Positions 1,233 to 7,200 are shown, numbered from the stretch's first letter. The stretch is 64,000 nt of DNA from Piromyces finnis finn (GCA_002104945.1 MCFH01000044.1:407332-471331), one strand, 5' to 3'. Translations and numbers: made by a program. Notes: generated by a model not told the origin, from the sequence alone.

Positions 1233-4200
1233 TCATTTATTCCAGTCCAATAAATAACATTTATAACCTTCTACTTCACAATTATCTTCTCTTGGTATAT
1301 ATTTAATACTTTGCGACCAACGTATTAATTCTCTTGTTGTTTCCGATATATTAATACCACCAACTGGACATACTTCTTGCACTTTTTCAGCAATAACAGA
1401 GGCTTTACCAACTAAATAATAACGAATAAATTTTGGACTACCTATAATTGCACCACTAATTTTGCCTTTATATTTATATTTATAGTTAATGAATATTTAT
1501 ATTTATTTATTTTATATGTTTAAAAAAAAAAAAAAATTAATGCTTTTAATTTATTATTCGATATTTCAATATTAATACAATAATAAATAATTTATTATTT
1601 TTTTTACCTGTATGAATACCAATTCTCGCTTTAAGTGGTCTTCTTATAGTATCAATAAGCCATGGTTGAGAATTTAGCTCATTTGATATATAATGTTGAA
1701 TACGAATGGCTGCTTTACATATAGAAATAGCATACTTTGAAGATGTATCTAAATTCTTGAAAAACATATCACTAAAAGTTTGTTCTAAATCAGAATTTTT
1801 TTCATTCGATAAACCTGAGCAACAAATATACGCATCACCAACGGTAGTAATCTATTTTGATAGCATTTAAATATTAAGGTTACATACATATTTATATATA
1901 AATAAGGAAGGGAATAAAATTTTATTTATGATATTTACTTTTTCGATTCCGTATTCTTCTGAACAGATTGTATCTAAATCAGTGAAAAGCCTATTTAAAA
2001 TCTTAATAATATCAATGGGTTGCAAAGTACTACATAATGGTGTAAATCTAATATTAAATGGAATATTAGATTTTAATTTTAAATAAAAAATTATATTGCA
2101 TTAATATTTTAATAAAAAACTAAATTATATATAAAATATTTTCTTTTAATAATTGCTCACCCCACTAAATCCAAATGAAGAATAGTGACATCTTTAAATT
2201 CTTCATACATAATAGATTGAGGATCAACTAATAAAAGCTTTGCTACTCTCTCTGGAAAAATATTATCCAACATTTCACAAGATTTTATTAATTCTTTTTC
2301 ACATTGTTGATGTTTTTGTTCATTTACTAATAAAGATAAAAATGATTTTCGAACATTTCTTTCCTGAAAATAATATATAATTGTACTGGATATTATTTCA
2401 ATAATAATAATTGAAATTATATCTAAAACAAGAATGGTTGGAGTATAAAAATAATCATTGATAGTTTTATTAAAATTTAAAGGTTCTTTTTTGTAAAATG
2501 TTTTTTGAATTTCCTCAAAGTCATTATTTTCATTATGATTAATTGGATAGTACCTTTTAATTAAATAAAATTCAAGTATATATACAAGAGAAGTGTATAA
2601 TGACATTACTACCCCAAATGAAACAGAAAGCTCCTTTTTTAAGATAGTACATGTATAGATAAGAATTGTAGGTACAATGATATAAAAATAAAAATGATAT
2701 GAATAATCTTGAATAACTATTGGTAAAAGTAATAATGACAATTTATTGGAAAAAACTATTAACAAAGAGATAACAATCCTAGTATTTTTTACACTGATTT
2801 TATTATCAAAAATATATATAGTTTTGTAATAAAACTGCTTTTTGAAATAGCTGTTTTTTGATTTTATATTATTCTGAATAGCTTTATGATAAAGAAATCC
2901 AATAATTATAGTAATTGCTTGCATTATTAATGGTATAACAAAAAAAACAATATTATATGTGAGATTTCCTTTGATGAAGCAAATAATTAAAGACATTGCA
3001 ATGATTATTAATGTAAATAAAAAGTTTTGAATAGAAAAACTAACATAATATTTTGAGTCTTTTACTAAACTATAAACAGTATATCTTTCCTCAATATTAT
3101 TATCTTTAAAACGTAAATTCAAATTAAAAAACATCTTCTTTTTAAATGTTTTTTCTCCAGATAATATTGATGCTGATACTGCCGATACATTGGTGGTTAT
3201 ACCGGTTGTACCGCCTAAAGATGAAGTATTAAAAGAATAAATTGGTTCATTTGGGGAATTAACTATATTTGGTGAATTAATGGCATTTGATTTACTAAAA
3301 TTTGAAAAATCTTCTTCTGTATTCGAAAAAGAATTATTACAATCATATATATAATTATTATTAATTACATTTACTTTATCATTTCGTTGAATAAGCTTTG
3401 CAATTGCTTTCGGGCTCAATTTGTTCAAAAATATATTATTATTAATAGTTGTTGGATTACCATCACCATTATAATTTGCGCTTAATCGACGTAAATTTGA
3501 ATTTCGTACGAAAAATTCTTCAGAATTCTCGATAGCTTTCTTATTTAAAATACCTGTTGAATAATGTCTGTTATGTTTATTAACTTTTATATGACAAGGT
3601 TGAATTTCATTTCTCTGAAAAACAGATAATGGTCCTAAAGTTAATAAATTTGGATCATTAGATGATGCTTCTGAAGAATAAAATTGAGTATCAATTTTAA
3701 GATTAGTTTTTACTGATGGATTTATAATATTATGAACAACATTAGAACGATTACTAACTATGGATGTCTTTCTAATGCGTGGTTTTACAGAATTAATAAC
3801 AGTTGTTTTGTTAATATTTTTATTGCTTTTGGTTTTAATAACTTGATTACATTCATCATTGTAAATGTTATCACTGTTAATATTGTTTTCTTGATTATTA
3901 TCGTTTTTGTTATCCACATTATCATCATCAATATTATTTTCATTATTATTATTATTATTATTATTATTATTATTATTATTATTATTATTATTATTATTAT
4001 TATTATTATTATTATTATTATTATTATTATTATTATTATTATTATTATTATTATTATTATTATTATTATTATTATTATTATTATTATTATTATCTTGGAT
4101 TTCAAAATTTCCTGAACTTTGGATATCCTGTTGATTATTATTAGAAAATGAAAATCCATCTTCTATAACCTCATTATTAGCTATTCCACCAATATTAAGT

Positions 4201-7200
4201 AATTGCATTTTAGGTGAATTTAATACGGATGAATTAATAAAAAAAGAATCCTCTTGAACCTTGTTTAGTTTATTATTATTATTATTATTATTATTATTAT
4301 TATTATTATTATTAAATACTAAATAATCTTTTGGGTTAATATCATTATCATTATTAACATTATCATTATTCCTTAAGATTTTGTCTTGATTTTGATTACT
4401 GTGGATATTAAATAATGGTAATATGTCTGATATATCCTTATTATTACTATCTAGGCTTAAAATGGTATTATCAATTTCTGGCATTGCATTTATACATATG
4501 TTCTGAGGAATGTTAACATTTAGATTTTTCAAACTAGGGTTAATAACGATTGCATTACTTTTATTATGTAGTGCTTCAGACATAAAATTTAAAACATCTT
4601 TTGTTCTTCTAGTAACTTTTTCTGGATTTAAAGAAATAGGAATACTTTCAACTATAGGTTCATATGGTTTATTAACAAACATATGACTATTAAAACTTGC
4701 ATGTTTATATTTAATAACTTCTTGAGGGGTTTTGACTTTCTTTTTTTTTACAGAATAAATATCCATATCCGATTTACCTTTAACAAATCGTTTGCCATAA
4801 TACTCAGTAATGAAATCATTCTTACATATTTCCCAAACATTTTTAGTAATAATAATATCATTAGGTTTTCCTAAATCGCACATTCGACTTGCAGTATTTA
4901 CTGTATCACCATATATATCATAAAGTAATCCTTTCTGACCAATAATACCAGTAACAACAGATCCTGTTTCAATACCAAATCTCAACTTGATTTTTAAATT
5001 TATAGGTACATCATTTTTATCATACACATTTAATTTTTCAAAGAAATTTCTAAATTCTAACGCTAGTAAAATTGTTTGAATTACATGTTCATAAGCTGTC
5101 ATTTTTGAGTGTTTTGAAAGTCCTCCACAAACAATAAGTTCTCTCGTTGTTGTCTTTGAATTTATAATTAAATATTAAATACGAATAAATATTTGTTTTT
5201 ATAAGATAATACTATTAATTTTTATATAATAATAAATAATAAATCTTACCTTTATTGTTTCTAATCCATAAAACTGATCAATAATATTATCCATTTGTTC
5301 AAAGATTTTATTAACAAAATGTACTGTACTTTTCAAACTCTTTAAATCCTCTTTAATAATTTCAACATAATTGAAAAGATCAACAAAAAGAATTGTAGCT
5401 GAATCTATACGCTCAGCTAATAATTCGTATTCATGATTAATTGATCTTAATTTAAGAGCAATACTTTTTGGTAAAACAAGAGCTAAAAGATGATCAGCTC
5501 TAACTTGCCGTAACTGAATATCATATGTCCTTAACTGAGTTTGTTTTAATTGTAAATAAAGTTTTCTTTTGTTGTTATCTGTAGTTTTTAAACGATATCC
5601 TGAAAGACATACAATAAAAAAAATCTGAGACCAATACAAAATGAGCCTTATTCCATTCTGGAAATTAAAGAAAGTATATATAGCCATCAAACAAATATTT
5701 GTACTGACAAAAAATATAAATTCAATAAATGAAATTGAAATACCCACTGTTAATGATTCCAGAATTAAAAATATCAACGATAATGAAAAAATTTCTTTAT
5801 AATTATATAGCCAATCCAATAATGATATTGAAATACATACATTTGCGAAAAACAAATATATTATACTTCGATGTTTGTAACTTAATATATACAATTTTCC
5901 CCATTTATATAATGTACAAAATAATAAACTTAAAATGGAGGTATAAAAATAAGAAATTACAAACCATTGATAAATTGTAATATTACAATAATTAAGTATG
6001 ATATAAGGTATTATATTAAATAATGAAAAAATGAATAATGTAATACTTATAAGGCGGTTAGTTAATATGCCATTTTTAACCATTTCTTTTGACCAATCCT
6101 TTTCATATACATCTGAGTTGATATTGGATGAATATATTCCAATCGTATTATTTTTATTATATTCCAAATTTTGAATATTCTCATTAATCACTTTATTCTT
6201 TTCTTGTCTTTTTAATATGGAAGGAATATATTTATTAAGTGATTTGATTAATGAACTTTGACCGTTTAAATCACCATAATTAACATTTTCATCATATGAA
6301 ATTCTTTGTTATCATTAATATAATTTTGTGTATTTTATAATATTGATTTAATATCATTGATAGTTAATATTCAATAATAAAACATAAATTATATAAAAAG
6401 AAAGAAAATATTAATAAGTATAAAATAAAAATGCAAAAGAAAACTTATATTATTTTATTATCTTAATAGCTATAATAAAAATAAAGTATACCTATGATTT
6501 AGTTTATTATCTAATTTATTTCCAATGCCAAGTATATGATTGTTAGATTTTGATGTAGTATTTATAGCATTAGTATTATTATTATTAGGGCAATTGCTTG
6601 ATGTATTGGATTGTGATGTTATAGTGGTGTTAGTTATATAACTTAACCTATTAAAATAATAATGCTTTATTTTTTCTTTAAACATATTTGTTGAATTCTT
6701 TTCAACCATTTCACGATTTGAATTTATATTATCAATATCTTCTTTACCTTGATCATTTTCATCAAATTTTAACTTTTTTGAAGATGGTGGTATTATAGGT
6801 GAAGAACCTATTGAAGGCGTATTAGAGATATTTGTTAACGGAGATAAAGTTTCGCTTAAATTCATATTTGGGGATTTAAATGTAAATGATGTTATATTAG
6901 GGTATTGTATTTTATTACTATTCAATGATGTATTATTTAAAGAAGTATTATTTTTATTATTCATTGAATATTTATTTGAAATAATATTAGTAATATTTGA
7001 TGATATATTTATTGTATTTTTTGAATCAAATTCATCTATGTCTTTTCTATTACTACCACGGAAGTCACATTTATCATAAACGGGCTTTGGTTGCAATAAG
7101 GATCCAACAATAATATTTTGGTTCATATTAATAACATCGGATGAAGTTAATGTTGTTGACTTCACAAAGGTTTTACTCATTGACATAGTTACTGTTGCTA

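Follow-up and report, generated by a model that had tools for sequence, protein, structure and literature searches.

Does the order of the two catalytic domains in a membrane-bound class III cyclase tell us which nucleotide the enzyme uses? In the textbook view the C1-C2 order is the mark of adenylyl cyclases, and the swapped order is associated with a few guanylyl cyclases of protists. The question is raised by a cyclase gene in a 64,000-nucleotide stretch of the genome of Piromyces finnis, an anaerobic gut fungus of the Neocallimastigomycota (GCA_002104945.1, MCFH01000044.1:407332-471331), which we call the window and to whose positions the coordinates of the gene refer. The window has a G+C content of about 22% and all parts of the gene lie on its minus strand. 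An initial annotation had described positions 1233-6303 as a two-domain membrane cyclase with transposed C2/C1 order and adenylyl-type specificity residues, and had judged this an unusual combination. Our analysis makes it likely that the gene encodes a 12-helix, single-chain, pseudo-heterodimeric class III cyclase whose halves stand in the opposite order to those of animals and which would form cyclic AMP (cAMP).

To assign catalytic residues, one profile was applied exon by exon and combined with a family alignment and the coordinates. All searches, profile assignments and trees were run on single exons or on naturally contiguous relatives (the contig L004 and the proteins given P numbers) rather than on a joined full-length protein. 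Against solved structures, domain 1 matched C2 of AC9, AC8 and AC5 best, at about 43 bits as opposed to 19-21 bits for C1, and the residues LLYDIYGDTVN around its purine-binding Asp are nearly those of AC9 C2. The sequence of domain 2 is distributed over four exons, which gave too weak a signal one by one, exon D alone retrieving only noise from the solved structures; therefore the contiguous orthologue L004 was used. Its best matches were the alpha subunit of soluble guanylyl cyclase (sGC) and C1 of AC8, AC9 and AC5, that is, the metal-binding halves of known heterodimers. The transposed order is thus borne out. As the two types of domain have the same fold, a structural model would tell apart neither order nor substrate. 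Moreover, the family PF00211 matched exon B at 76.3 bits (E 3e-21, cut-off 21.9) and exon A weakly at residues 259-314. When the species' own genome was scanned, the same family scored 94.8 bits in domain 1; in domain 2 its match to exon D, at C172:408934-409188 (window 1603-1857), reached 27 bits.

The catalytic residues are divided between the two domains. Domain 1 retains the first metal-binding Asp (LFVDLF, 5379-5381), has Arg at the second metal position (5142-5144), and carries the purine-selecting Lys (5250-5252) and Asp (LLYDIYG, 4917-4919) together with the transition-state Asn (4896-4898) and Arg (4884-4886). Domain 2 has both metal-binding Asps (LHLDLV, 2169-2171; TVGDAY, 1834-1836), and Thr (1846-1848), Tyr (1416-1418), Val (1395-1397) and Lys (1383-1385) replace the purine Lys, purine Asp, Asn and Arg, respectively. 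The profile reads L004 in the same terms, as D D, T Y and V K. One complete catalytic set therefore lies across the interface, with two Asp in domain 2 and Lys, Asp, Asn and Arg in domain 1. Every motif named in the initial annotation was found on the minus strand where it had been placed, and its account of a domain 1 lacking the second metal Asp, of a domain 2 lacking Asn and Arg, and of an adenylyl-type Lys/Asp pair agrees with both profile and alignment. In the alignment 21 chytrid orthologues preserve the complementary pattern, as does every full-length orthologue examined, and it is therefore not due to chance.

In class III chains one domain binds the nucleotide and the other the metals, and the pair Lys/Asp selects adenosine triphosphate (ATP), whereas Glu/Cys or Glu/Ala selects guanosine triphosphate (GTP) (PMC6592433). 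Glu may be joined by Cys, Ser or Ala in selecting GTP, and the domains pack head to tail with a degenerate mirror site (PMC6592433, PMC12264004). By this scheme the two cytosolic domains of the Piromyces protein would associate head to tail, with a single complete active site between them. In it the metal ions would be held by two Asp of the C-terminal domain, which resembles C1 and sGC alpha, and the C2-like N-terminal domain would supply both the Lys and Asp for reading the adenine and the Asn and Arg for stabilising the transition state. The mirror site (Asp/Arg with Thr/Tyr/Val/Lys) would be degenerate and at most bind a regulator. We infer this dimer geometry and the preference for ATP from the residue pattern; since the metal site of domain 2 and the Lys, Asp, Asn and Arg of domain 1 make up a complete site, the predicted product is cAMP.

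How secure is the reading of these residues across the introns? Exons A to E comprise one split base and 1543 codons with no stop or frameshift, and the four introns, all GT..AG, have a G+C content of 8-17% compared with 23-30% in the exons. Comparison with the sequences of three related contigs (L001, L004 and L005) confirmed the four splice junctions. Intron 1 (5154..5249; 96 nucleotides, 9% G+C) cuts domain 1 directly after the specificity Lys. L001, a genomic metagenome contig, encodes the protein P0001, which is 89% identical in domain 1, and is interrupted by an intron at precisely this codon boundary, between K and TTTRELIV: its exon ends in IIK followed by GT, 279 unrelated AT-rich bases intervene and the next exon starts TTTRELIVCGGL. 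In the family alignment the chytrid orthologues all read IKT through this site without interruption, and every one of them has Lys at the specificity position. From the first codon after the acceptor, all 351 codons of exon A align with L001 free of gaps, at 75% identity. Lys is the last codon of exon A in both species, and the idea that different splicing at 5154..5249 might put Glu at the specificity site is not borne out.

The three junctions in domain 2 were matched residue for residue by L004 and L005, which are 83% and 78% identical in exon D. LDLVG-FTP (intron 2; 2048..2160, 113 nucleotides), GIEK-ITTVGDAY (intron 3; 1852..1938, 87 nucleotides) and GIHTG-KISGA (intron 4; 1466..1607, 142 nucleotides) are all uninterrupted in L004, and the last two also in L005. 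As both contigs are contiguous here, the reading frame across each junction is fixed, whether they represent transcripts or intron-poor genomes. These results bear on the view that the gene is a model artefact or a decaying pseudogene, which we consider highly improbable. Such a view could appeal to the absence of a start codon within 1233-6303, to the very long low-complexity stretches and to the fact that the splicing evidence comes from relatives. However, the frame is unbroken, the introns are all canonical, the junction-spanning sequence of the relatives agrees with the model throughout, and the helices and domains are strongly conserved whereas the linker between them is not. Judged from its sequence, the cyclase gene looks intact and functional.

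Is the combination of swapped order and adenine-type pocket as rare as first supposed? A word search with the Zopfochytrium homologue returned full-length proteins of the same layout from about 30 chytrid species and Hyaloraphidium, annotated as hypothetical or, automatically, as adenylate cyclase. A corresponding search for annotated Neocallimastigomycota orthologues returned P0001 alone, its results being swamped by low-complexity words. A family profile (A1) built from 13 members was run against 1.84 billion representatives and every match was classified by one domain profile. Among the nearest 150 cluster representatives, 79 two-domain proteins were classifiable. The swapped order was paired with Lys/Asp in 20/79, with Lys/Glu in 19/79 and with a Glu-type pocket (ER, EK, ES, EH or EA) in 24/79; one further swapped protein had Asp and an unclear first position. 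The animal order was accompanied by Lys/Asp in 14/79 and by Glu/His in 1/79.

The judgement of an unusual combination therefore holds only in part, as swapped Lys/Asp proteins are as common in this set as swapped Glu-type proteins. The arrangement is not rare, since it marks a conserved family of zoosporic fungi, and the named swapped Lys/Asp proteins also include further chytrid paralogue families, Pigoraptor (Holozoa) and Fabomonas (Ancyromonadida). A swapped protein with Glu/Lys came from the stramenopile Platysulcus, and the P4-ATPase fusions in the set carry Glu/Ser or Glu/Ala, in agreement with the literature. Among the named matches the fungal membrane cyclases were those of flagellated fungi, with none from other fungi. 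Because the swapped order is so commonly paired with an adenine-type pocket, in this gene and in its relatives, domain order says nothing about substrate. The gene does not represent a new enzyme class; it belongs to a conserved uncharacterised family and is mildly unusual rather than unique. The family is visible in public chytrid annotations, but no paper describing a fungal family of swapped cyclases was found in the library of literature that we searched, to which this absence is limited. A paper on the origins of the P4-ATPase-guanylyl cyclases makes no mention of fungi or Dictyostelium (PMC13466520), and another mentions cyclase solely in the context of CO2 sensing (PMC13644296).

Several chytrid entries in the set (P0038, P0039, P0044, P0073, P0074 and P0135) have a swapped cyclase joined to RasGEF/SH3 or Zn2Cys6, or four consecutive cyclase domains. 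Such entries could reflect genuine fusions or tandem genes, or else gene models that have been merged.

The closest relatives differ from the window gene in the purine pair. All complete core chytrid orthologues (19/19; P0003, P0029-P0054) have Lys/Glu, whereas the window gene and P0001 have Lys/Asp. We know of no characterised enzyme with a Lys/Glu purine pair. In the D1 tree the exon B piece fell, as part of a polytomy, into a clade with the Lys/Glu chytrid family, Hyaloraphidium and a Nowakowskiella paralogue (support 87 in the Shimodaira-Hasegawa-like approximate likelihood ratio test, SH-aLRT), and this clade was nested in a fungal clade (94) otherwise made up of Lys/Asp proteins. In the D2 tree the orthologue L004 was sister to 19 Lys/Glu chytrid proteins (SH-aLRT 77), again inside a fungal clade at 94. 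The placement of these sequences suggests that in the Neocallimastigomycota the window gene corresponds to the core chytrid family, and that Lys/Asp came first and was changed to Lys/Glu in the chytrids. More speculatively, swapped Lys/Asp membrane cyclases might be an old and widespread eukaryotic form, present in zoosporic fungi, Pigoraptor and Fabomonas, of which the swapped guanylyl cyclases and perhaps the animal C1-C2 enzymes are offshoots. In that case order and nucleotide choice would have had separate evolutionary histories, and the chytrid Lys/Glu pair could be a variant of substrate recognition; we regard this scenario as tentative and, as a whole, rather doubtful.

Several observations weigh against a cAMP-forming enzyme of the kind proposed. 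The support for splicing is comparative and comes from relatives, and the N-terminus proposed for the protein is provisional. Orthology has moderate support (77-94 SH-aLRT), obtained in quick tree searches. For every member of the family the substrate is a prediction from its residues. Moreover, the closest chytrid orthologues are Lys/Glu proteins and no enzyme with this pair was met in the literature consulted, so that analogy does not settle the substrate. Finally, the C1 Arg that contacts the gamma-phosphate is Lys in the window gene and Pro in most chytrids.

The question of substrate leads to a guanylyl or dual-specificity cyclase, akin to the swapped enzymes of Dictyostelium and the alveolates, in whose scaffold the Lys/Asp pair would not decide the substrate. 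We think this unlikely. The characterised swapped two-domain cyclases that we found are indeed guanylyl cyclases (PMC6592433), the orthologous chytrid family carries the unassigned Lys/Glu pair, and the genome already has a Cyr1-type adenylyl cyclase. However, all swapped enzymes in our set with a guanylyl-type annotation or context have Glu in place of this Lys (P4-ATPase fusions, ES or EA; others, EK or ER), whereas the window gene has Lys, in a Lys/Asp pair whose neighbours are almost those of AC9 C2. In addition, the replacement of Glu/Cys by Lys/Asp is enough to make an adenylyl cyclase of a fungal rhodopsin guanylyl cyclase (Scheib 2018, cited in PMC12264004).

The missing gamma-phosphate Arg of the metal-binding half would instead fit a protein that is catalytically silent or very weak and whose function is that of a membrane receptor or scaffold or of a partner regulating another cyclase. 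This we rate as slightly less likely still. The six canonical positions of the composite site (two Asp, Lys, Asp, Asn and Arg) are intact and conserved across the family, and it is the mirror site that has decayed, as it has in active transmembrane adenylyl cyclases and sGC. Furthermore, in the alignment the gamma-phosphate Arg is absent from sGC alpha too, and among solved structures sGC alpha is the best relative of domain 2. An active, cAMP-forming cyclase thus remains our preferred reading of the gene.

The core chytrid family, represented by database entries from Spizellomyces punctatus (SPPG_04407), Rhizoclosmatium globosum (BCR33DRAFT_766665) and Zopfochytrium polystomum (DFJ73DRAFT_378481), shares the layout and the complementary pattern of the window gene and is 52% identical to it in domain 2 and 43% in domain 1. 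Besides the difference in purine pair, the window gene has Tyr in domain 2 where the chytrids keep Asp, and its linker, very AT-biased and rich in poly-Asn, is unlike theirs. With the mammalian enzymes AC1-AC9, of which AC9 is the best solved match (PDB 6r3q and 7pd4), it shares the succession of six helices, domain, six helices and domain, the single composite site and the Lys/Asp pair. However, the halves are reversed, the C2-like half coming first in the window gene, and the animal cyclases have neither the extra-long linker nor the N-terminal extension; a Pfam search of the exons gave no match to the animal membrane or N-terminal regions. Mycobacterium tuberculosis Rv1625c/Cya, among the better solved matches for both domains, also joins a six-helix anchor to a class III domain with Lys/Asp, but it is a single-domain protein that forms a homodimer with two equivalent sites. 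The fungal Cyr1/Cdc35-type enzymes share the class III domain and presumed cAMP product; unlike the window gene they are soluble RA-LRR-PP2C proteins with a single cyclase domain that act as homodimers.

Among swapped enzymes, Dictyostelium discoideum GCA was reportedly described by Roelofs et al. in 2001 as a 12-helix guanylyl cyclase of transposed order. The initial annotation had taken the transposed order to be typical of Dictyostelium GCA and of alveolate guanylyl cyclases. For the latter the literature agrees, the inverted order being documented for Toxoplasma and ciliate guanylyl cyclases; for Dictyostelium it documents two cyclase domains and no ATPase-like region (PMC6592433). The P4-ATPase-guanylyl cyclases of alveolates and stramenopiles, among them those of Paramecium, Plasmodium (GC-alpha/beta) and Toxoplasma (TgATPaseP-GC), share the inverted order with the window gene, their nucleotide and transition-state residues lying in domain 1 and their two Asp in domain 2 (PMC6592433; P0005, P0006, P0008, P0011, P0016, P0182). 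They differ in their N-terminal PF16212/PF16209 and in their Glu/Ser or Glu/Ala pair, and they form a separate clade in the D1 tree (support 99). A Pfam search found no P4-ATPase family in exons A and B or in the open reading frames (ORFs) upstream, and the guanine-type pocket of the swapped guanylyl cyclases, with Glu at the Lys position, is replaced by Lys/Asp.

Which other cyclases does this fungus possess? A PF00211 scan of its genome (56.46 Mb in 232 contigs), which gives a lower bound on the number of cyclase loci, returned two further loci, on contigs C163 and C35. The former (L002; C163:159000-168999, at about 586-9101 on the plus strand) is a second two-domain membrane cyclase of swapped order. 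Its domain 1 has Lys, Asp and ASRM, and its domain 2 has both metal Asps, Gln at the Lys position and no Asn or Arg. The latter (L003; C35:676000-685999, ORFs 2468-4570 and 4797-8114) encodes a Cyr1-type RA-LRR-PP2C-cyclase with a single cyclase domain. The initial contrast with the Cyr1 type is therefore right in that the window gene is of the membrane type, but the genome encodes a Cyr1-type cyclase as well, so that this gut fungus has both soluble and membrane types.

Given the coexistence with a second swapped paralogue and a soluble Cyr1-type cyclase, we infer a regulation and physiological role in which the window gene probably serves a membrane-linked, possibly zoospore-related, input. 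It is thus a candidate for membrane-linked cAMP signalling in the zoospores of gut fungi and chytrids. Its value lies mainly in this candidate membrane source of cAMP in zoosporic fungi and in the decoupling of domain order from substrate choice. Moreover, as gut fungi naturally have Asp where chytrids have Glu, the two groups offer a means of probing purine selection.

The remaining features of the gene follow from its N-terminal side. Exon A (5250..6303), an ORF supported by its gapless alignment with L001, hydropathy and the profile, contains 72 conserved N-terminal residues, a block of six hydrophobic helices (5598-6053), a helical transducer segment and about 60 residues that begin domain 1 and end in the purine-selecting Lys. 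Exon B (2161..5153), an ORF supported by its PF00211 and PDB matches, hydropathy and the profile, begins with the remainder of domain 1, including the Arg at the second metal position, the Asp, Asn and Arg described above and VKGK. A low-complexity linker of about 570 residues makes up its middle part, and its distal part holds a second block of six hydrophobic helices (2379-3023), another helical transducer segment and the strand with which domain 2 opens, bearing its first metal Asp. Both helix blocks were recognised from hydropathy alone, as six peaks in exon A and six in distal exon B, and each is followed by a helical segment of the type LP..[IV]A..L and then by the cyclase domain. Exon C (1939..2047; 36 codons and one base) covers the helix alpha-1 region of domain 2, corresponding to PF00211 positions 27-57. 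Exon D (1608..1851) carries the second metal Asp and the Thr at the Lys position. Exon E (1233..1465) completes domain 2 with the Tyr, Val and Lys of the degenerate half-site and ends at a TGA stop (1233-1235).

About 60 Asn codons follow one another without interruption (about 3939-4121, minus strand) in the linker that separates domain 1 from the second helix block. This linker can barely be aligned with that of P0001 despite the 89% identity of the two proteins in domain 1, whereas the flanking domains are conserved. In L004 (contig Ga0307465_100165, positions 1613-6131) the frame is open for about 1490 codons from the first base and the linker has roughly 1000 residues; domain 1 should lie in the preceding 1.6 kilobases of that contig. 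In L005 the cyclase match begins in the middle of exon C and positions 1-400 hold a seemingly unrelated reverse-strand coding stretch. This contig could result from chimeric assembly or represent a truncated copy.

Lastly, the limits first given for the gene are right at the stop, but position 6303 is a splice acceptor rather than the point where the gene begins. The codon to which base 6303 belongs starts in an exon further upstream, an in-frame stop lies upstream of this position, and exon A has no in-frame ATG before residue 73, although the 72 residues before it are conserved. The acceptor is also conserved in L001. As 6303 is an acceptor, at least one coding exon must lie upstream. A low-complexity ORF (7231..6470) has an in-frame AG/GT donor that can be joined to 6303, which would give an intron 0 at 6304..6491 (188 nucleotides, GT..AG) and a candidate upstream exon at 6492..7231, encoding an Asn/Ser-rich low-complexity N-terminal extension with its ATG at 7231; both lie on the minus strand. 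Beyond it a second low-complexity, Asn/Ser-rich ORF of 563 residues (8971..7280) could be linked in frame through a 48-nucleotide GT..AG gap (7287..7240), and the stretch 7288..8971 on the same strand is a weakly supported candidate for a further N-terminal exon or a separate gene. No Pfam family was found in either stretch (6492-7231 and 7288-8971), and no other ORF of at least 80 residues occurs as far as 12336. A scan for bacterial promoters and terminators upstream gave 56 against 62 expected and was uninformative, as expected for a eukaryote. The upstream ORFs may therefore form a very long N-terminal extension, or the distal one may be a separate gene. In the paralogue on C163 a comparable extension of about 800 residues lies in one ORF with its first helices.

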